64,000 nucleotides of DNA from Macrostomum hystrix (GCA_950097015.1 CATNEN010000034.1:4836001-4900000); one strand, 5' to 3'. Positions 4,828-55,430 are shown, counted from the first letter of the stretch. Program-made: numbers and translations. Notes: generated from the sequence alone by a model not told the origin.

Positions 4828-5136
4828 GTGAGTGAGTTTGCCATTATTTTCCAACACTTTTGCTCCAATTTAGTAACTGTTTTGTGCCCTGATTTGGAAG
4901 TAAACAGAGGCTAATGTTTATCATAGTGACGTCTCCACTCAAGATTTATGGCTAAAAAACCTGAATTGCAGCATTTCCAATCTGAGTAATTAGAGAAATA
5001 CCTGCTTTCACTAAAAGATCAATTAATAAATTTGCTGGCTTTTCTCGGTTGTGAGACAAAAATAAAATGCTCTAAACCTGAACGTTTAATAATTATGAGA
5101 AGTAATTTGTGTAAAAGGTTTCGATTTATCATTTTA

Positions 5137-40020: not shown

Positions 40021-40958
40021 GTCGCTCGGTTTCGGTGGATGCTCACTGGCTTCCTTCATTTCAGCAGCTCTCGTGAGGTGGTCTGGGTCATCGTCGTTTC
40101 TAATAAGTATTATGAAAGTACGCACACGTAGTTTTGGTATGATACGTCAGAATTTATCTGCTAGGACCAGAATTATCTGATTCTGTGGCGACCTTCCAAA
40201 ACATGACGACAGATTAGAAACAGGAGAAACAAGTCTAGTTCACTGACACTAGCTCTTGGCTAGGCTTAGTCGGCTTAATTGCTAGTAAAACAGCTACATT
40301 AGTTAGAAGATTACCGACCAACAAAAACAACTTTCAAATCGAATATACTCACGCGAACCGTCGACAGAAGCCGCACTGCCATGTAGGAAGCTCAAGGCCG
40401 TCGGCCGGAAAAACCAATGCACTCAACGTGAGCCCAAACGTGACACGAGTCACAAAAGATCTGTCATGATTAAGTGTGGAAGCGATCAATGCGTGGTTTC
40501 TTTATTGTAGTATTCGCTGCTGCGTAACAGTTTCTCAAGGTTTAAAATATCACGGTTCTTGTTCCTGTTTCTAAAAATATGCCAGTGTAAAAAAGAGATA
40601 CAAAAATGTAGGAAAAATGCTATAATATAGTTTTTAAGAAAACACACAATATATTAAATAATGTAGTCAGTAACAACACTAGACCAGATATAAGACATAG
40701 CATATATTGCTAAAGTATATATAATAGAGTATGACCAAGCCTTGATTTTGGTCGAGTCTAGTACTTGGTTGAGTATTTCGAGGTCAAGTTGAGTAATTCA
40801 AGTCAAATTGTCATGTAGTAGTAGATGTATAGAGGATAGAGCCTAATTACAAATCTTCCTCTCTCTTGGTAGCGTATCACTCGGCAGAAGCGGTTTTATC
40901 CACAGACCAAGTAATATAACCAGACTGCGCACAGGAGAGAGAGGGGCGTGTCAGTTTT

Positions 40959-43900
40959 GGGTCTACGAGGTTTGCCAGCCGGAAGGTTGCCAGCCGAAGG
41001 TTGCCAGCCAGAAGTTTGCCAGCCAGAAGTTTGCCAGCCGAGAGGTTTGCTAGCCGGAAGGTTGCCAGCCAGAAGTTTGCCAGCCAGAAGTTTGCCAGCC
41101 GAGAGGTTTGCTAGCCGGAAGGTTGCCAGCCAGAAGTTTGCCAGACGAGAGGTTTGCCAGCCGAGAGGTTTGCTAGCCGGAAGGTTGCCAGCCAGAAGTT
41201 TGCCAGCCGAGAGGTTTGCCAGCCGAGAGGTTTGCTAGCCGGAAGGTTGCCAGCCGAGAGGTTTGCCAGTTTGTCCCATTCCCCACATTATTCAAGAGTT
41301 TGACTCAACTCCCTCTCCCCTCCATTTAACCGTTTCAGCGTTGCTTACTTTCAGGTAGACAATCAGAAAAGCCAGACGTGACTATTCAGGAAAACATTCT
41401 CCTTTCTATTTCCAGATCAGCTAGTTTCTCAAAAAACTTCAACGAGCCAGCCGTGTCCCCGAGCCCTTATTTCATATTGATTTCGATTGAGAGGACGAAA
41501 TTATGCTGCAGAAAAATGTAACAGTAATTATCTTCAGGAACTCAGAACCCCCACCCCCTATCGTGAGTTCCCAAAAACAAAAAAGACAGAAAATGGTATT
41601 ACAATTTTTTACAGACTCTTGTATAAAACTATTATTACTGCTTTATTACTACGCTATTACACATGATGGCACGTGCAAAGAGTTGGAACTGTTTGAGAAA
41701 AAATACAACTCAATACAGTAAAAAGAATTCGGTGCAACAGCGCAACAAAATGTTTCTGTGTAACTCAAGCCGGGAAAAACTGTATTACAAAAAGCAGCAC
41801 CACAAAAAGGTAGTTAAGCATTCGCCATCATCAGCTTCTGGGCAAAAGCGACTCTAAAAGTTGCTAGTGCTTACTTGTATTAAGTATAATTCATCCTTCT
41901 TTAATTACTTCGGAACTTTTAAAAGCATTTTCATTATTAAGAGTGCCACCCAAGGCCAAGATAGTAAAAATCAAATATACTAAAATAAGGGACCGAACTG
42001 CAAATGTATGAGAAACTGACAAAAACAGCAGCACCCTGAAAGTTTGAACTCGTCTAAATTGTGCCTCACAATTTGCAACGAATGTGATTATAGAAAGATT
42101 ATCCCCTGGTCTTTACCTGTAAAACAATTATGTCACTATATTTCACCGCAGTATTGACAGCTTGTCATTTGATAAACAATTGCCAGCTATTACTTGCTCA
42201 AGTGATGGGCGATGCCCCTCAGGAAAGAGCGCAACGGAAAGTCAGCTGGCAGTCCACCGTCATTCCAGCGTTGCGTGATGCGCAGGACCATCGCGTTGCT
42301 CTGCGCGTACTTCTGCCTCTCTTGTGGCACTTCGCCCGCGGCAGCTCGCTGCATCAGTAGGCGCTGATGGTCTTGTTCCTTTTTGAGGCAGCTGAGTAGC
42401 CTGAAGACTTGCGGACTGCTGCACGCGAGCACGACTTGAAGCATTCGATGCCAAGCTTCCACACAGTTGTTGGTCCGATGCCGACCCTCAAGCGTGCGCT
42501 GACGGACGTTCCAGACGGCTAGTTCAAACCTTGGTTGCCGCCTCTGGCCATTTGGAAGACGCCGACCAATCCATTGATCCTCAAAGTAATTCGCCACCGG
42601 CGTGAGCTGCTCTGGGAAACCAGGCATCATTATCAGGTCGTCAAACGATGTGGCGACGGAGTCAATGGGCACAAATGGCAGAGCAGTGAGGCAGCGCATC
42701 TAGAGCGATGTTTCCCCATCGTCCTGCTCCAGCTGTTGCTTTGGGCCTTCAGATATGGCCTTGCGGTACACGCACTGCCCTATGTGAAATAGACACCCAG
42801 ACGCGACAATGTCAAAAACGTGCCTGATGGCGTTCATGTGCGCTCGCTCGAAGTCGGCCATCCACCTGATTGGCTGCATGTTTGGTGCAAGATGGAAAAG
42901 CGTCTCGTAAAATCGCTGGTAAGTTTCTTGCGTCTTGTTAGGCAACAAGGCGTATATAAGTGGCCGAACAAACCCATGCCGCTCAACGTGGACTGTCATC
43001 AACTGAGCAAACAAAGTCGGAGAAGCATCGAATGTTCCATCCGAGTAGAAATCACTTGCTTCTTGCAGAAAGCCGAGGCTTTCCTCGCAACCGAAAATCA
43101 GGATCCGATCCGCCGTAGGTCCAGAATCGTGGAGTAGAAACCGCTGTCCATTGTGCTGTTGAAAATCTTCAGGGAGAACCAGCTCAGCTCGACTGGTTGG
43201 TTGGATGGGCAAGCCCTGAACCACTTTACGGGTAGATTGGACCATTTTCTTCAGCGCGGCTTGATTGGGAATGGCGACGGCTGAGGCCTCAGGGAGATTG
43301 TTAGTATTCTCCATGATGATGGTTGTTGTTGGGTTATGAGTAGTAGCAGCTTCTCGCTTCATGCCGCGTATGGCTTCTAGAGCATGAAAACGAGCACCAT
43401 CTGGCCCGTGATTGTGCTGATGCAGCTGCTCAACCTTCATGCCGTCGCGCACATGAATTCGAACGGGGCACGAATCGTGCCGGCCTTGCTCACATTGCCA
43501 GAAACTAAGGGCTTCGTCCAATTTGCTGACCTTTTCGAAAACAAAGTAGTATCCTTCACATGCAAGTTTCGGTTTGCCTCGCTTTGTAGTGGTCGCGCGA
43601 ACCGGTGTTTCGTCCATGATGTCTCTTTCTCTCAAAAGCAATGCCTTGCAAAGTCAGACGAAGCTACGAGTATATATTTCGTCCACACACAACACACCGC
43701 CCACCCACCCCTAATCCCTTCACGCAGACAGCCCTAGCGAGTTTTATGACCCCGTGCAAACCAAAGCAACACAGCCCCCCAGTTCAGTCTTTGTCTTAGC
43801 TTAGCCCAGCCCAAGGATCTAAATTTTGGCTCACGTTCCCCTTACTGCGTCCTGCGGATGCTGTGAAGGCCTAAAGATTGGCGGATTTTACACCCTCGGC

Positions 43901-44426
43901 CCAAGGCAGCGAAGCTGCGTGAGTCATCCTGCATTGCCCACCCCCCCAAACGCAGGGGCTGTCTCAAGGACAGAAAGCTACCAGCCAATAGGAACTCTCC
44001 CAAGACGAACGCCTGGGCTGTTGGGCTGGGGGAAAGGCCTAAGTAATTTTAACACTTTTCGCCTCGAAGATAGCGAAGACAACGTCAACAACGTCATAGC
44101 AAACTGTCCAGCAGCTGGCAAACTTCTGGCTGGCAAACCTCTCGGCTGGCAAACTTCTGGCTGGCAACCTTCCGGCTGGCAAACCTCTCGGCGGGCAAAC
44201 CTCTCGGCTGGCAAACTTCTGGCTGGCAACCTTCCGGCTGGCAAACCTCTCGGCGGGCAAACCTCTCGCCTGGCAAACTTCTGGCTGGCAACCTTCCGGC
44301 TGGCAAACCTCTCGGCGGGCAAACCTCTCGGCTGGCAAACTTCTGGCTGGCAAACCTCTCGGCTGGCAAACTTCTGGCTGGCAACCTTCGTCTGGCAACC
44401 TTCCGGCTGGCAAACCTCGTACTCCC
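40959..44426 (-). mobile_element. MULE/Mutator DNA transposon, 3468 bp, with about 310-bp minisatellite TIRs
   Basis: Ends GGG(TC/AG)TACGAGGTTTGCCAGCC; perfect 8-bp TSD TCAGTTTT (40951-40958, 44427-44434). Confidence 0.92.
42190..43641 (-). pseudogene. FLYWCH-MULE transposase, about 483 codons with one in-frame TAG (42700-42702)
   Basis: FLYWCH-like N-terminus (W.C...C...H.H); DGTF, DFE..H..A, GCLFH and RTNN.VEAWH motifs; both ORF pieces are in one frame. Confidence 0.92.
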
Positions 44427-44917
44427 TCAGTTTTAGTGTAGAAAAAATGGGTCCCCCGCGAAACCCCCCTCCGCGATCGATAATGGAACTAAAGTTGATT
44501 CCCCCAAAAAGGATTCCCCCCACTGGCGCTGCCCTTATGCGAGCATTAAGCACCCTATACCACAGATTCTATATTACCCTTATTCTATATTCTATACTAC
44601 TCTAGATAATATAGAATCTGTGCCCTATACTGCCTGGCTAATTTTATTCATGTGCACTCTATAGGATTCATATGATGCATGTTCTAAAAAAATTAGCATA
44701 TATTATTTATTTTTTAAGTGGATAAAATGTTAGTTTCAATAATGAAAAAATTGACAACGAAAGAGAAATTATTGACGAAAACAGCGACAAAAAAAACAAA
44801 ATAGTTTGTACGAGCTAATTAAGTCAGCATTAAGCATGCAAAAGTTCAGTTAGCAATGGCTTACCAAAAGAAGATTAGAAAAGTCCAACAGCAAGGAAAT
44901 TTTAGCACGCAATATGT

Positions 44918-45404
44918 TCACAAGTTAAGAAAAATAGCTGTTCTCAGCAGTTTCTGCCTCCTTCCAGACTTGACAGTGGAGAGATCCTTGGCTACCTTCT
45001 TCATGCGCACGTTGATGAAAAACTGGCTGAGAACTCGAATTAGGTGCAGCTTGTGGGATTCAATGCCGATGCTGTAGACAGCTGAATGAGAATCCAGATC
45101 ACCGAATAGATTGGCTGACACCCGCAAGAATCTCCTGGATGGCGAGTGCGCTCCGAAAGCTGCAGTCATAAGAAGATTGCCGGATAACATACTCTGCATG
45201 CAGAAACACTCGGAATGCATCAGCGATGGGAAACACAAGTCCTCCGCGGCCTTCGCTATTCATTGAATTATTTTGCAGGGCGAGGGAGGACGGAAGGTGC
45301 GAATCACCGTAATCAGATAAGCTTGAGCTGCCAAGCAGGGCGCAACGACACGGTGCACAGTCCAGGATCTTCAGCACACTGCGAACCACAGCTCCTCCTA
45401 TATA
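44918..45404 (-). pseudogene. P/THAP9-type transposase C-terminal region (3' part; the 5' part is at 48869-48995)
   Basis: YIGGAVVRSVLKILDCAPCRCALL; RGGLVFP; KLHLIRVLSQFFINVRM..RQKL. Removing the CACTG insert restores VVHYIGGAVVR. Confidence 0.8.
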
Positions 45405-46165
45405 CACTGTAAAGGAAAAGTGGCCGAAAAAGTGGCCCATTGGTGGCCGAATGCACGTGGCCGAATGGTGGCCGAAAGAGTTCAAACCGGGGCTACTAGT
45501 GTCCACTTAAGTGGCTAAAAAAGTTGACCATAAGTGGCCGAGTGTAGGTCAAGGCATTCCGGGGCCACTAAAGGCAATTTATCTGTATATGGTCCATGAC
45601 TGAATGAATTTCCCGACGCGTGTTAAAAAAACAAAATAATAAAGGAACGGAGACAGTTTCCAAGATATAGCTATTAGGCTTTTGTATACAGTTATATATG
45701 TATACTAATGAGTTTAAGTTGCAATTATTATTAATAAACTAATTAACGTTCATTTTCAATTATATTTTTTAAACACAGATGTTTATAATGCTTATTGTAG
45801 AAAAACAGTAATTACATATTGGTACATAAAACCGCACAAGATGCATACATACAAGAAACAATTGAACAAAATGTAGAAGCAAAACTAAGTTAGGCATGCA
45901 AATATGAGTTATGAAAAGCATAATCATTGAAAAGGAAAATTATGAGTTTTATAAGTACATCCAATTATGGTTTACTTGGATGGTTTATGGTTTATCAACA
46001 CAAACTTATTTAATTACATTGGTAAAACACAGATGTTTACAATGCTTATCGGAGAAAAACTGTAATTACAGTATACACTGGGATACACTGGGAGAGCATT
46101 ACAAAACTTTTAAATGTCAATTATAATGCGTGGACAGTCTTAACAGACAGGCAGTAACAAGGCAA

Positions 46166-46650
46166 TTAAGCCAACGGCAGTATTTTGGTTACTCCTCGAA
46201 TGGACTGATTTGAGCCTTTGCTTACTTTTCGAAATCCGAATATTATTTCCAAAACTTCGAGAAGGTTTTCAGTTGCCTTATCATGGCGAAGATTTAGGGC
46301 AAGGTAGACCATAATCAATGTCTGAATAGCATGCAGACTCGATTCCGTGCAGCTGACACGTAGACCGGCAACTTGCACAAACCACATGCCATCGTTCACG
46401 ACGAGGTGCACAAGCTTTGATGGCTTAAAAAAAGCAGTCAGCTTTTTTACCTGGCACTTTATGCACAAGATCATGAAGCCTCTCTGGGCAATTTCGTCAC
46501 CGCTTGGTGTGGCAGGCTTGAGGTACTGCTGTGCTCTTGCGCAACGGCGAAATAGCTCCCGGTTGCCGCACAGCCATTGAAAAATTCTTGCAAGCTTGTT
46601 GCGCTGCAGAATGTCCTGCTCCTTGAAGTCGCAACTCTTTAGAGAGTTGT
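46166..46650 (-). pseudogene. C-terminal part of the EnSpm element's second (accessory) ORF
   Basis: LALNLRHDKATENLLEVLEIIFGFR aligns with the C-terminus of the 49138-50526 ORF. Confidence 0.7.
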
Positions 46651-46652
46651 AG

Positions 46653-48239
46653 TCAGAATTTTTCGTCTGGGCATAGTACTGTCCATACATCACTACGCTG
46701 CAAAAAAGAATGATAACGTAGACAGAAATCGGAATCTTCTGCTTTGGCTTTGCAAAATCTGCAAACATAGTCTGATTTAAAATTACAACCTAATCCAACT
46801 AAAGTATTCATAGACAAATTGTCACCTACACAAAAACAGGCAATAACAGGAATTCTACTACTATTAGATCCCATTTCATTTGAAACTTCAAATGAAATGT
46901 CATATAAATCATATTACCAATATCATATAAATCATTCAGCTCCTTAATCAAAGGCAAATAAGATTCATAAAGAGAAACACCATTAGGATTACTATTTTTG
47001 TTATAAATACTTTTCCACTTTACTAAGCTAGCCAAAAAAGTCAAACTTTGTTTAGATTGAAATTCAGAAGGTAGATTCAACACTTTATAGTATATAGCAG
47101 AAATCTTATGCTTGGTTCGTGCTTTTCCAATTGGGTTACAAACCTCAAACTCCTCTGTATATAGAGAAATATAAATTGCCTTTGCATAGTCAACTGCTTG
47201 CTCTTCAGAGTCTAACAAAGGAATAATGTAGTTTTTTAAATATGGACTTCTAAAAAAAGGCCCTTTTTTCTCTAGATTACTATTAAGAATCAAATTATTA
47301 AACTTGCTACTTTGAACTAATGATTTAAGACTTGCACCTATTGGAACATAGTAAATACAAGACCCATGTAGAGAAGATGTAACTTTCTGTGGCTCAATAT
47401 AAGAAAAGTTTTGTCTAATATATTGTAATAATTGGCTTTCACTAAGGAGAATATCAAGGCAACCATCAAAATACATATCAAAATCAAGTTTTTGCTTGAT
47501 ATCTGCAATTTGTTCAGTGTTCATTCCTTGTTCCTTAAGAACTTGTTCCATAATATTACTAAATGAATTAGAAAATGATGCCATGATATCATGAAGTTGA
47601 CAACTTAGATTTTTAGCTACAGAATTAGGCAAGCCATGACAATCACGACTATTGATAAAAAACATGACTATCTTATGAGCAATATCATCTTGCAATTGTC
47701 CTTTTAATTCAAATGCACTGAGCTTACTAGATACAATAGCAAATGGAGGTTGGATGGGTTCAGAGTCAAATAGGCCAATATGTTTGATAGTTTGATTGCT
47801 AACATTGTCAGTGTCAATTTCACTTGTAACTGTAGGCCTCTTAGTAGTAGTATTAGGCATACTGTCATCAGGATCAGCCAAAGATTCATCCAAAATAGGA
47901 TCATTTAGTTGGTCACTAGGTATAGGATTTCGAGGAGTAGCAGTGGTGGATGTTTTCTTAGTCAATTGACTCAATATCTTCAAGTGGACTTTCTTAAGAT
48001 GACGAGAAACCAAGGACTTGGTTTTTGGAAGAGAACATGCAGCCTTTCGAAGGACATTGATGTCGGCGATTCCTAATAAAATTGTTAGCACAAAAGTACT
48101 TGTAATGGTAATTAAATGTAGCACCATCATTTGATGAGAAGTTACACTTGCAACAGAATACAAACATCAAAGCTAGTTGCAGCAGAATGAATCGAGACAT
48201 TATAATAAATATGAAATGTAGACAATAATAGTAAGGCAC
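46653..48239 (-). pseudogene. Animal EnSpm-type transposase, frameshifted and 3'-truncated, with N-terminal C2H2-like fingers
   Basis: LYTEEFEVCNPIGK..KHKI..IYY..LNLP and GDNL...CRFC motifs; frameshifts near 48025 and 46870. Confidence 0.85.
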
Positions 48240-49137
48240 AAATATTAGTTTAGATAATAGGCAAATAATTCAATAGATGTCGATGATTCGGCTAGGCTAG
48301 ATACTTGTCAAAGGTTTAGAGGTTACTTGGACTGGCAGCGGGCACTCACAAGAGGAAGATTACTTGGCAATAGGTCAATTTGTAATCGCAAAACTCGGAG
48401 AAGCTATAGAGGAGATTATTGTAATAGCCAGGCCCGCATGGCGGCCATCTTCTTTTAGTTTGTAAAGGTGCTTAAATTTAAAGTATTAACAAACACTTTA
48501 ATATAAACACTAAGTCACATTGAAAAAAACGTTTTAAAGTTAAGGATATGCTGCAAATATTTTTTACACTTTGTCCCAGGCCATAACGTTCAAAGCTGAA
48601 TTCATAGGTTTGTCGTTAAAACTTTTTCTTTTAGTACGAAAGAAGCTGATTAAGACAGGCCACTTTTATTCTATGAAATGCAGGGCCACATGTGACGAAA
48701 CATTGTTTTTGCACCCTTTACATGGCTCTGTATTTAGCAACGCAAACCATGAGGTCGATTTATTCAGAATATTTCGGCCACCCTTCGGCCACCCTTCGGC
48801 CACCACCAACGTTCGGCCACTGATCGGCCACTGTTTGCCCACTTCACGGCCACTTTTCCTTTACAGTGTAGTGCACAACGGACTGGTACATCTCGCAAGT
48901 TGACAAGGAGCTGCAGTGCTGAATCGAATCCACACGCTTTCCAACTGAGTTCAGCACAGGCATAAGACTCCGTAGAAGTTAAGAACTGGAATCCGCTGAA
49001 ATTAGCAACTTTAAATTTTCATGCATAGCTTTTCCACAATTTTAGCTTGTGCTTAAATATAAAAAACACTTTCTGAACCATATACTACACCAAAACGGTT
49101 TCCAGAAACAATTGAATGCAGAAAAGATGCAGTTGTC

Positions 49138-50526
49138 CTACATAGGCAAAATGCGTACTAAGGTCTTAACAGTAGAATTCTTTGCTCGCTTGGGGTTGCG
49201 TAACCCCAGAAAAATTTCAACTGTCTCCAAAAAGTTCTCCGTTCGGCAGTCGTGCTTCAAATTGAAGGCTAAGAAAGATAGGACGTAAACTAAAATTGAT
49301 TCGAGCGTTGATGCGACTTTGACTGCAAAGTTCGAAACTCGGACAGCGAACCATCGGTCTTCGAAATTTTCGGCAGCAATGCTCACAATGCGACTGCTAT
49401 CGAAGAACGCATTGAGATCCGTCTGCTTTGTCTTAATGGCCAAAAGCATAAGGCCTCGCTTAAAAAGAACGTCCGGGTCCGCATCTTCGCTTCGATTCTC
49501 GAGATACGGTGCAGCTCGTTTGCTCCTGGAGAAAAGGTCGGCATTACGCCCCATCCAGAGCAGCAGATACCTCAGGCGCTCAGTCAGGGCTTCCATACTG
49601 TACTGAATTGGCAAATAGTCGGATGATAGAGCCGTTGTGTAGAGCTCGACTACTCGTAAAGCCTCCTCGCAGAGAAGGCGAGCGTTGCCGAGTAGAGGAT
49701 AGCTTTTTAGTTGCTCTTCAATGGTCATAAGTTGAGCAGCTACTACACGGTCATTGAACGTCGCCTTCAAAAGCTCGGAGGCTTCTTTAATCGGCACAAC
49801 AAGATCGCCATCGTCGATCATTTCGCGCATTTTTGAGTAGTCGAAAGATTCGCCTGCTTCCATCACATCCTCGTCGATCATCGATGCCAAATCACTGGCA
49901 CGAACATCGTGCGCACTGTTTGAGTCGGAAGAAGCGGGTTCATCATTTTCAGCTGAGTCAGAGACAGAGTCACTCTGATGACCCAGATCCTGGTCACGCC
50001 GTCGGATGTGCTTCGCACTCGTTGCACTTGCAGCAGCAGCAGCACCACCATCACCAGGCTTTTGCTTCTCAGCGAACTTTTGGCGCATAGCTAAAATTTT
50101 AGGCGGCAGTTCTTCGGTGGCAACAAACGCCTTTTGCCGCCAAAATCGCAATCGTCGACGAATTCTGAGGCGCCAATAGTCGTGGCCTGAACCGAGGAAG
50201 GCACTCGAGTCTGCTAAATTGGGAAACTGTCCAATGATTGCGCTAGAAAATACTTCTAGCTCCTTGTGCTCGAGGTGTGGCTTGTCGCGATTTATGTAAT
50301 TGGACGTGATGTCAGCCACTATTTGGCGTAGAATGGCGTTGACGAAACACTGGTCATTCTTTAATCGGGTAGCCTTCTCTTTCGAATCAGCTAAACAAAT
50401 TTTCTCGACCAGATCATAAGGGTACTCTGGAAGCTTGTATACCAGAGGCACATTTTTTAAAGCAGTCGATTTTTCTGCTTCCTCTGGCTGATTGGCCGAA
50501 ATCCTTCTACAGGTTGCGCAAAACAC
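49138..50526 (-). CDS. 462-aa open ORF homologous to the EnSpm accessory ORF, located in the P-like element
   Basis: Uninterrupted frame; N-part AII.QFP.L.D...G...W..RIRRR; C-terminus clearly paralogous to 46166-46650. Confidence 0.75.
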   Translation of the reverse strand: MFCATCRRISANQPEEAEKSTALKNVPLVYKLPEYPYDLVEKICLADSKEKATRLKNDQCFVNAILRQIVADITSNYINRDKPHLEHKELEVFSSAIIGQFPNLADSSAFLGSGHDYWRLRIRRRLRFWRQKAFVATEELPPKILAMRQKFAEKQKPGDGGAAAAASATSAKHIRRRDQDLGHQSDSVSDSAENDEPASSDSNSAHDVRASDLASMIDEDVMEAGESFDYSKMREMIDDGDLVVPIKEASELLKATFNDRVVAAQLMTIEEQLKSYPLLGNARLLCEEALRVVELYTTALSSDYLPIQYSMEALTERLRYLLLWMGRNADLFSRSKRAAPYLENRSEDADPDVLFKRGLMLLAIKTKQTDLNAFFDSSRIVSIAAENFEDRWFAVRVSNFAVKVASTLESILVYVLSFLAFNLKHDCRTENFLETVEIFLGLRNPKRAKNSTVKTLVRILPM

Positions 50527-50729
50527 TCTGGAGTAAAGTGTTCAGAGCACACCTTGGAATGCTTTGAAGGTTTAAAATCTTTGCGGCGGAGAGCAGCTAT
50601 CCATTTTTTCTTAACATCATTGTCCTTCGGGAAGGAGTGAAATGAGATTGCTGACGAACTTGAGGCCCTGTTGCTACAGCCAAATGCTGTGCAGAAGTGA
50701 CTGTTTCCTGGCTTATTAGCTTGCTGCAT
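50457..50729 (-). CDS. THAP zinc-finger DNA-binding domain
   Basis: C2CH pattern: CTAFGC..FHSFP..W...R..VCSEHF. Confidence 0.92.
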   Translation of the reverse strand: MQQANKPGNSHFCTAFGCSNRASSSSAISFHSFPKDNDVKKKWIAALRRKDFKPSKHSKVCSEHFTPECFAQPVEGFRPISQRKQKNRLL

Positions 50730-51275
50730 GGTATGCTGATTGAATTATTTTTCGCTACACATTCATCAGTTTTCTTAATTCATCAACCATATATATATTT
50801 CATTTGTACTTAGCAGTCAGTACAACCATGTGTGCTTGATGAGATTTTAGTCAGAAGAACTGCATGGGGACCAGGGCACCCCACTATCCCACTGTTCCAT
50901 TATCGATCGGGGGAAAGGAAAACTGAGTGCCATTTCCTCTATGACAAACAAGACACGCACCCCTTAGTGTGGGGAACACCCGCATGCGCAGTCTAGTTAT
51001 ATTACTTGGTCTGTGGTTTTATCCTTCTAAGGCACTGGTCTCTTATTCTCCAGTCTTTGCTGGGCGTTTTCAGTGGATCAGAGGGTCACAGCCTCAAATA
51101 ATCAACTTAACACTTGAACACCTTCTTACTCAGTTATAGCTTATTTGCTTTTCGACACACTGGCACATTTATTTGTCTCACATGAATTGCAGTCGTTTAT
51201 ATACACAAAAAGGTTTTTTAAATGAATGAATTTGACAGAATATTAATAATATTTTACATATTAAAAATTTATGTA

Positions 51276-51485
51276 TATTATAAATACCGCAATGAAAGTC
51301 GTATATAAATACTGCATTAAAAACTGCATCGAAAGTTGTATATAAATACCGCATCGAAAGTCGTATATAAATACCGCTTTGAAAACCACATTGAAAGTCG
51401 TATATAAATACCGCATTGAAAACAGTCGTATATAATTACCGCATCAAAAGTAGTATATAAATACCGCATTGAAAACCGCATCAAA
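51276..51485. repeat. Degenerate about 22-bp array (TATATAAATACCGCATTGAAAG)
   Basis: Directly visible; reverse complement of the 37220 array family. Confidence 0.8.
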
Positions 51486-51489
51486 AACT

Positions 51490-51723
51490 CTCTGCTCTGT
51501 TTCTAAGGGACTCTTGTGGGATCTCGGCTTTGTTTCTAAGGAACTCTTGTGGGATCTCTGCTCTGTTTCTAAGGAGCTCTTGTGGGATCTCTGCTTTGTT
51601 TCTAAGGAACTCTTGTGGGATCTCTGCTCTGTTTCTAAGGAACTCTTGTGGGATCTCTGCTCTGTTTCTAAGGAACTCTTGTGGGATCTCTGCTCTGTTT
51701 CTAAGGAACTCTTGTGGGATCTC
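51490..51723. repeat. 33-bp minisatellite (CTCTGCTCTGTTTCTAAGGAACTCTTGTGGGAT) x7
   Basis: Directly visible. Confidence 0.95.
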
Positions 51724-52334
51724 AGCACTGTCAAAAGTGCCAGTAATTCCGTGATTTGGGTTCTTCCCGGTGTCTGAAATGGTAAAAAAAGAACAATGGT
51801 AAAATGTGTTTCAAACCTAAGGTTACGACCCTAAGATTAAAAAACGAAATATTTATGTTTTTGATAAATAAATCAGGCAAAATGGGTGCCTTTTACATTA
51901 TTGCAACTGTTTAACTCATTATTGTTGAATTCTGTGCCTAAATCTGTTATCTTTTGACAGAAAAACAACTTACAATTCAAAAAATATATTTGCCGGATTT
52001 CTGTTGTTACGACCCTAAGAGTGATTCTAGCCTTTAATTCAAGTTCATGATCGTCTTTTATTCATCCGTTTCTTTGGTCATGTGTTAGTTCACAGATTTT
52101 TTAGCATTTTAGGACCAAGTAATCATGACAGCACTATTTTTGACAGTGCAACTTTGAATTTTATCTGTAAATGTTACGACCCTATTTACATGGAATGGCC
52201 CACTTAGTTATTCAATTCCAAATCTTTAATACTTTATAGTAATAAACAAGACAGTGTTTTAAAACAAAATATCACAAAAATGTGCTAATACTTTTCTTAT
52301 CAGAAAATGTTGCATGAAATTAAATAGTATTATA

Positions 52335-54728: not shown

Positions 54729-55430
54729 ATGTTTGACCCGAGCATAAAGAAGAAGAAGAAGAAGGTCGAGGTCGAGGATGTGCCCGATGATGCCCCAGCT
54801 GTTGATGACGAGCTGGAGGCAGATTTCAATCTGGAGAGCAAAAAGAAGAAAAAAGCCAAGGAGCGGCCGGCAGCAGCAGCTGAGGACGACGGTGGCTCTG
54901 CAGCAGGAGCGGCGTCCGGGCTAGAGGGCGGGCCAGGCGAGGACGCGGACTATACTTACAATGACCTCCTGAGCCGGGCCTTCAGAGCCATGATGGAACG
55001 CAATCCGGACATGCTATCCGAGAAGAAAAAAGTGGTGATGAAGCCGCCCTCGCTGATGAGGGTCGGCACCAAGAAGACCGCCTTCGCCAACTTCACAGAT
55101 ATCAGCAAGCAGATCAGACGCAAGCCGGACCACCTGCTGGCCTACTTGCTCACTGAGCTGGGAACCACTGGCTCAGTGGACGGCAACAACCAACTCATCA
55201 TAAAGGGCCGCTTTCAGACAAAAAATATAGAAAGTGTGCTGCGCTCCTACATCAAGGAATATGTGATGTGCCACACATGCAGGTCGCACGATACTGAGCT
55301 TGTGAAGGAGACTCGGCTCTTCTTCCTGCAGTGCAGCACCTGCGGCAGTCGCTGCTCCGTGGCCAGCATCAAGTCCGGCTTCCAGGCTCAAGTTGGCAGG
55401 CGTGCCGCCCAGAGGGCGAAAGCCACTTGA
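54729..55430 (+). CDS. EIF2S2: Translation initiation factor eIF2 beta subunit, 233 aa, single exon (copy 2)
   Basis: Same protein as copy 1 except for one V/E difference. Confidence 0.95.

Follow-up and report, generated by a model that had tools for sequence, protein, structure and literature searches.

A P element in the genome of the flatworm Macrostomum hystrix carries, where the catalytic core of its transposase should lie, coding sequence from a transposon of another superfamily. The locus is contained in a stretch of 64,000 nucleotides (GCA_950097015.1, CATNEN010000034.1:4836001-4900000; referred to here as the window) and is very probably a single-copy, dead-end derivative of a P element, the interior of which was replaced from the ORF2 gene of a CACTG-type CMC element. 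A first-pass annotation of the window had proposed a cross-superfamily capture, with the P transposase core swapped for the coding sequence of an EnSpm-type accessory ORF, and this central claim is borne out by our analysis. The annotation further considered that the capture had created a fused protein, a new composite transposon family, or a transposon regulator. Since the two parts are joined out of frame and at one locus only, the locus is better described as a recombination scar than as a new fused gene or transposon family.

The host element and its sibling copies

P elements are recognized by terminal inverted repeats (TIRs) of 31 bp and a target-site duplication (TSD) of 8 bp. The element in the window, previously described as P-like, is a true P element by its 31-bp TIRs and a perfect 8-bp TSD, and its span is larger than first read. 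It occupies positions 40901-51015 on the minus strand, with the 5′ TIR at 50985-51015 (minus strand) and the 3′ TIR at 40901-40931 (plus strand), the two differing by one mismatch. The TSD, GTTTTATC, was read directly at 40893-40900 and is identical to the copy at 51016-51023. The 31-nt terminus, CACAGACCAAGTAATATAACTAGACTGCGCA (inverted at the 5′ end in the window), has 26 matches in the 220-Mb genome, compared to 0 for a reversed-pattern control.

The remaining P sequence in the window is collinear with a sibling copy located at C39:1189422-1220937, the body of which corresponds to L039 2457-5944. Window positions 50888-50493 align with L039 2457-2852 (98.5% identity), 48999-48869 with L039 4847-4977 (97.7%), 45404-44623 with L039 4976-5758 (94.6%), and 44560-44427 with L039 5751-5888 (95.7%). 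The first of these segments belongs to the 5′ body (50493-50984, minus strand), which comprises the 5′ UTR and the THAP exon and was delimited by identity to the sibling copy, including 97% identity between window 51000-50880 and C39:1189437-1189559. The second is the stretch of body between the foreign block and a CACTG insertion (48869-48999, minus strand). The last two fall in the 3′ body (44427-45404, minus strand), a decayed C-terminal transposase region with 94.6 to 95.7% identity to L039 4976-5888 and 92% identity to a third copy (L040). The first-pass reading of this region as a remnant of the P transposase C terminus stands insofar as it is P-element sequence, with 92 to 96% identity to two sibling copies, but it has no Pfam match: neither the window ORF at 45099-45506 nor the corresponding ORF of the sibling gave a hit at E ≤ 0.1.

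The sibling copy encodes the parts of a P transposase that the window copy lacks. Its Pfam matches comprise a THAP domain (3.8e-21; profile positions 1-87 of 87, including the AVPSIF motif), the Tnp_P_element HTH (3.6e-17), TNP-like_RNaseH_N (2.3e-38), and TNP-like_GBD, the GTP-binding insertion (5.7e-11), and its interior also encodes a coiled coil. Both the RNase H-like catalytic core and the GTP-binding insertion are absent from the window copy, which is therefore a non-autonomous member. The third copy (C38, L040) likewise keeps a transposase remnant, in which residues 1-109 of the 280-aa HTH/RNase H ORF of the sibling are matched at 93% identity. Because the sibling copies retain transposase sequence, replacement of the core is confined to the window copy. 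The further P copies that bear these TIRs (C39:3.57 Mb, C39:14.9 Mb, C30, and C2) were assessed from search tables.

Two side observations concern P elements elsewhere in the genome. The sibling copy at C39:1189422-1220937 carries a nested insertion of ∼28 kb between its 5′ TIR region and its THAP exon. Separately, a different P-type transposase (30% identity to that of the sibling) was found with identical scores at six places (C3:2733974, C3:10491339, C31:124897, C33:1348769, C38:27494907, and C1:11092327), in each case as an open frame of 573 aa closely preceded by a THAP domain. This transposase may represent a recently active P family.

A foreign block in place of the transposase core

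At positions 49000-50492 (minus strand), 1493 bp stand in place of a 1994-bp stretch of P transposase sequence. Inside this block the window and L039 are unrelated, and on both sides of it they are 95 to 98% identical. As first annotated, the region between the THAP domain and the P 3′ part lacks an RNase H-like core, and the sibling has one at that place. The block derives from the ORF2 gene of a CACTG element, of which it holds the 3′ portion (linker, N-domain, acidic linker, C-domain, and stop) followed by 138 nt of 3′ tail; the CIDE-N head of ORF2 is absent from it, as is a SAM head.

The junctions read ...GGATTTCGGCCA/ATCAGCC... and ...GCTAATT/TCAGCGGA..., where the slash marks the breakpoint. 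No CACTG end is present at either of them, in agreement with the first-pass annotation, and the block is thus a replacement rather than a simple nested insertion bounded by its own TIRs and TSD. Junction microhomology is minimal and amounts to one 6-nt echo: ATCAGC occurs, perhaps by chance, both at the 5′ junction and in P sequence bordering the 3′ junction.

The block is missing from both sibling P copies, and a DNA-level search of the genome retrieved no other copy of it, the best match being 72% over 173 nt. Despite P flanks that are only 1.5 to 5% diverged from the sibling, the assembly contains no donor, so that a nucleotide-level reconstruction of the capture event is not possible. The donor may have disappeared since, may have escaped assembly, or may be polymorphic. 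Among 119 THAP hits in the 220-Mb genome, the window locus is the only one at which THAP and an ORF2-family sequence are juxtaposed. With the block confined to one locus and lacking from the siblings, the idea of a new composite transposon family was not upheld.

ORF2 is an accessory gene of CACTG elements

The open frame of 462 codons that spans most of the block (49138-50526, minus strand) has 27 ORF2-family matches in the genome. Its best paralogue is a 558-aa ORF on C24 (L002:1501-3174, minus strand), with 53% identity over residues 20-461; other members of the family include frames of 578, 501, and 398 aa (on C29, C25, and C7, respectively). At six loci (the window, C39:16.6 Mb, C1, C24, C29, and C7), genes of this family lie inside elements that end in CACTGTAA and are flanked by 2-bp TSDs, which at five ORF2-carrying elements read TA, TA, TA, TT, and AA. 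The elements on C1, C24, C29, and C7 are 12 kb, 5.2 kb, 3.9 kb, and 2.5 kb long, respectively. A 2-bp TSD presumably points to the Mirage-like side of the CMC superfamily.

In the larger surviving elements (the 12-kb element on C1, the 5.2-kb element on C24, and others), ORF2 is a separate gene located 3′ of ORFs related to a 445-aa ORF in the window. Two fragments of these upstream ORFs matched Pfam Transposase_21 (PF02992, tnp2) at E values of 0.0015 and 0.004, below the curated cutoff, and the nearest Atlas clusters of the upstream ORFs were Plavaka (24/30) and Transposase_21. No intact transposase was found among the ORF2-carrying elements examined. Given the CACTG termini, the 2-bp TSDs, and a position 3′ of Transposase_21-like ORFs, the first-pass label of an accessory ORF from an EnSpm/CMC-type element is a fair description.

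Elements with CACTGTAA ends bear arrays of short subterminal repeats, by which two subfamilies can be distinguished. GTGGCC repeats characterize the elements on C1 and C24 (L055/L056/L060/L061), which carry the clade of the 462-aa frame and L002, and GGTCCG repeats characterize those on C29 and C7 (L057/L062 and L014), which carry the clade of L008 and L014. Each subfamily thus has its own ORF2 clade, as would be expected if ORF2 recognizes the subterminal repeats. In plants, TnpA of En/Spm (CACTA) is the second gene in an element with arrays of short subterminal repeats, and ORF2 holds the same position in CACTG-ended elements with such arrays. By analogy, we infer that ORF2 would work as TnpA does, recognizing subterminal repeats and oligomerizing. 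Unlike TnpA, however, ORF2 has a CIDE-N head and shows no similarity to any Pfam TnpA family (nothing but noise at E ≤ 1).

Nested insertions in the window

The P element was itself a target of such an element. A nested, nonautonomous CACTG (CMC/EnSpm-type) element of ∼3.46 to 3.47 kb lies at 45405-48868 (minus strand), with a perfect inverted repeat of 24 nt, terminal CACTGTAAAGG..., subterminal GTGGCC repeats, and a TA TSD. It contains a 445-aa ORF that represents the N-part of a transposase (46826-48163) and a 200-aa C-terminal piece of ORF2 (46166-46768, minus strand), and is an internally deleted derivative in which the former has been joined to the latter. The resemblance between the C terminus of the 462-codon frame and this ORF2 piece, on which the first-pass annotation relied, was reproduced (34% identity over 147 aa; E = 2e-26). 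An empty site is provided by L039, which at 4955-5000 runs straight across the insertion point and reveals the TA duplication, and a second copy of the element, 99% identical, is present at C39:16.6 Mb. CMC elements in this genome commonly carry large internal deletions.

A second nested element, at 40959-44426, is foldback-like, with inverted arrays of 15/16-nt repeats at both ends and a TSD, TCAGTTTT, at 40951-40958 and 44427-44434. It separates the terminal 58 nt of the P element from the rest, a position at which L039 and L040 are uninterrupted.

Beyond the P element, at 51456-51764, a 33-nt unit is repeated in tandem at least 7 times, leaving several frames open on either strand, and is adjoined by 25/12-nt repeats at 51272-51486. 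Just outside the transposon cluster, an uninterrupted 233-aa ORF with an eIF2-beta/eIF5 domain (54729-55430, plus strand; Pfam, 7.5e-40) marks a host gene.

Origin of the chimera

The probable history of the locus would begin with the insertion of a P element at GTTTTATC. A later event would have exchanged an interior stretch of 1994 bp, beginning immediately ahead of the THAP AVPSIF motif and comprising the coiled coil, the HTH, the RNase H-like N-part, and the GTP-binding insertion, for 1493 bp that were copied out of the 3′ portion of a CMC ORF2 gene. The most likely route, modelled on proposals for single-copy Pack-TIRs and for P-element gap repair, is a double-strand gap in the P element, during the repair of which synthesis would have switched template to a CMC element at an ectopic site. 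As a result of the join, the ORF2 body lies one base off the frame of the truncated THAP domain that precedes it. Having kept both TIRs, the chimera could in principle have moved in trans; it appears never to have amplified. The foldback-like and CACTG insertions would have followed, bringing the element to its present length of 10.1 kb.

The same structure could have arisen if a CMC element, full or partial, had first inserted in the P transposase region and deletions on both sides had then removed its TIRs, the CMC transposase, the CIDE-N part of ORF2, and ∼2 kb of P sequence. This P copy is demonstrably a CACTG target, given the element present 130 bp downstream, and large internal deletions are common among the CMC elements here, including the 3.47-kb derivative in the window. 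Nevertheless, we consider such a course rather unlikely, since it needs at least two extra deletions that left no trace of a TIR or a TA TSD, and the clean replacement is explained more simply by one gap-repair event.

Architecture of the ORF2 protein

Pfam searches with the 462-aa ORF, the 445-aa ORF, and the P 3′ ORFs returned no significant family, and an exact-sequence lookup of six ORFs from the window and its paralogues found none of them (0/6) in the sequence collection. A word-index protein search with the 462-aa ORF also found nothing, probably because its low-complexity linker swamped the search; a full HMM search was used afterwards. When the ORF2-family profile was run against 1.84 billion representative proteins, 83 hits were obtained at E ≤ 0.001. 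All six of the full-length hits scanned begin with a Pfam CIDE-N domain (four proteins from Macrostomum lignano and two unnamed metagenome/Logan proteins), as does the paralogue on C29 (2.1e-10). A sequence search of the PDB with the same profile matched the CIDE-N domains of ICAD, CIDE-A, and DREP2, in the CIDE-N part only. UniRef models annotated as "CIDE-N domain-containing" (2034 and 2381 aa) were rejected as evidence for elements, as these are gene-model fusions with neighboring host genes (DAXX, L20, and WASH).

Among the more remote matches are proteins that bear the name "sterile alpha motif domain-containing protein 3-like" in fish and Ciona and uncharacterized relatives in Hydra, sea urchins, and ticks, some of which carry a SAM head. 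The primary HMM E values for the SAMD3-like hits were 3e-8 and 1e-7 against the 1.84 billion proteins. An hhalign comparison of the ORF2 family with the SAMD3-like set gave 99.6% probability and an E value of 8.3e-24 over 339 columns, covering everything behind the head, in a test that is partly circular because the hits that make up the second alignment were themselves collected with the first profile. The ORF2-family loci compared were window 49141-50469, L002:1501-3174, and L008:1498-3231 (all minus strand). ORF2 and the animal SAMD3-like proteins share a body with a WPxVYxLP motif, a helical domain, MRxKFGRK, an acidic linker, and a C-domain ending in FNLxH. They differ in that the ORF2 head is CIDE-N rather than SAM and in that the ORF2 genes lie inside transposons.

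The native layout of ORF2 is a CIDE-N head, a helical domain, a disordered acidic linker, and a confidently modelled C-domain. AlphaFold predicted the whole body with a pLDDT of 78.9, residues 136-207 forming the disordered acidic linker, and the C-domain alone with a pLDDT of 93.3 and a pTM of 0.91. Fold searches with the whole model (Foldseek, E ≥ 2.2; VIA, Z ≤ 5.8) and with the C-domain (Foldseek, E ≥ 0.8; VIA, Z ≤ 5.0 over 66 residues) stayed below the tools' own guides, and neither tool found a solved structure matching the ORF2 body beyond common helical arrangements. As all scores fell below these guides, no fold was assigned. Residues 38-118 gave a weak homeodomain-like structural lead (Z of 5.3 and rmsd of 2.5 over 60 residues), also below the tool's significance guide. 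Our searches found no assigned function or solved structure for the SAMD3-like family beyond its head domains, and in the literature we found no paper linking CIDE-N to transposons or SAMD3 to transposable elements.

The THAP domain and the ORF2 body are out of frame

The overlap between the THAP ORF and an uninterrupted frame of 462 codons was annotated correctly, in coordinates and residues alike; the two were searched here as separate sequences. The THAP ORF is truncated, encoding 90 aa at 50457-50729 (minus strand), and matches Pfam THAP at 1.1e-16 over profile positions 1-62 of 87. The C2CH zinc module is kept; the AVPSIF motif and everything downstream were lost at the junction (50493/50492). 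The 462-codon frame is homologous to the ORF2 family from about codon 20 (50469) onward, codons 1-19 being an out-of-frame read of the THAP region and the junction, and its first ATG occurs at about codon 146.

The THAP frame stops at a TAA (50457-50459), and the ORF frame is one base off. The first-pass annotation had noted that a one-base shift would fuse the two and create a motif resembling the THAP terminal AVP. The frames do differ by one base, such that translation would pass into the ORF frame upon a −1 shift or with one base more ahead of the TAA. The resemblance to AVP does not hold: NVPLVY is the WPxVYxLP motif of the ORF2/SAMD3-like family itself, found also in CIDE-N-headed paralogues and in SAMD3-like proteins. 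Lengthening the A6 run by one A would leave the TAA intact, so the needed change must lie upstream of the stop. We rejected programmed −1 frameshifting, as TTTAAAA, the heptamer that looks like a slippery site, has the X_XXY_YYZ register in the ORF frame and not in the THAP frame. One candidate mini-intron that would join the THAP and ORF frames was read by eye and found to be out of phase. Because the THAP domain lacks its C-terminal third and the ORF2 body follows it one base out of frame, the sequence as assembled does not encode a THAP-ORF2 protein, and the proposed THAP-accessory fusion protein is not supported.

To what extent the open frame reflects selection was gauged by simulation. 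With 0.75 to 2.5% substitutions, the per-lineage range implied by the 1.5 to 5% divergence of the P flanks, a frame of 443 codons stayed open in 25 to 65% of trials. Openness is thus expected by chance in this share of cases, and the intactness of the frame is not evidence of selection. All 443 donor-derived codons are open and sit directly behind the retained P promoter region and the THAP start codon, an arrangement that leaves room for their expression.

It is on this arrangement that a functional THAP-ORF2 gene, whether regulator or domesticated protein, could be founded, the reading frame being restored by a sequencing error, ribosomal frameshifting, or splicing. The open donor codons and the retention of the P 5′ region and THAP ATG would suit such a gene; a −1 shift would yield ...RLLLKNVPLVY, with a spacing similar to that of the THAP AVP motif, and the ORF2/SAMD3-like family does swap N-terminal heads (SAM versus CIDE-N). 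We nonetheless regard a functional gene as very improbable. The stop persists even with an extra A, TTTAAAA does not qualify as a canonical −1 slippery site for the shift needed, the THAP domain is cut at position 62 of its 87-position profile, and the VP motif belongs to the ORF2 family. The locus, moreover, is single copy and without relatives, and its openness is expected by chance. For the same reasons (the frame, the truncation, the single locus, and chance openness), a role as a transposon regulator was not sustained. Hardly credible at all is an assembly artefact, in which two repeats were chimerically joined: both partners are indeed repeats, but both junctions lie inside one P element with matching TIRs and an identical 8-bp TSD 10 kb apart, and P sequence resumes in register after the block, a collinearity that a misjoin would not restore.

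Comparison with known systems and significance

Read as a product of repair, the chimera has close parallels. For single-copy Pack-TIRs in animals, a gap-filling model has been proposed, with a median filler of 224 bp (Tan et al. 2021, PMC8277862). Like those elements, the window locus is a TIR transposon with a foreign interior, internal breakpoints, a single copy, and presumed template-switch repair (PMC8277862). It departs from them in that the filler is 1.5 kb of coding sequence from another transposon superfamily rather than host DNA, that no parental copy of the block is identifiable in the assembly, and that microhomology is minimal.

The KP element, in turn, is an internally deleted Drosophila P element that encodes THAP and a leucine zipper and acts as a repressor. 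As in KP, the window copy keeps its TIRs and N-terminal THAP region and has lost the catalytic core. Unlike KP, its THAP domain is cut before the AVP motif, the coiled coil is gone, and foreign sequence has been added.

The chimera is an ordinary one-off chimeric transposon, one more case of a DNA transposon gaining foreign sequence during repair. With every junction, the TSDs, and the empty sites in view, the case is clean and can be resolved completely, and it shows that the filler can be the near-complete gene body of a transposon from another superfamily.

More useful than the chimera itself is the link between ORF2, the SAMD3-like proteins, and CIDE-N, which places the SAMD3-like family in a genomic context and equips it with a domain map and a confidently predicted structure. 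A broader, tentative reading is that SAMD3-like proteins serve as the CACTG/CMC accessory (ORF2) gene in this flatworm lineage, with interchangeable SAM and CIDE-N heads. Animal SAMD3 could then be domesticated accessory proteins or a host gene captured by transposons, and the P chimera would be a snapshot of a THAP head swap that failed by one base. In all, the context of ORF2 makes a hypothesis testable, namely, that SAMD3-like proteins would bind the subterminal repeats of transposons and oligomerize via their SAM or CIDE-N heads.
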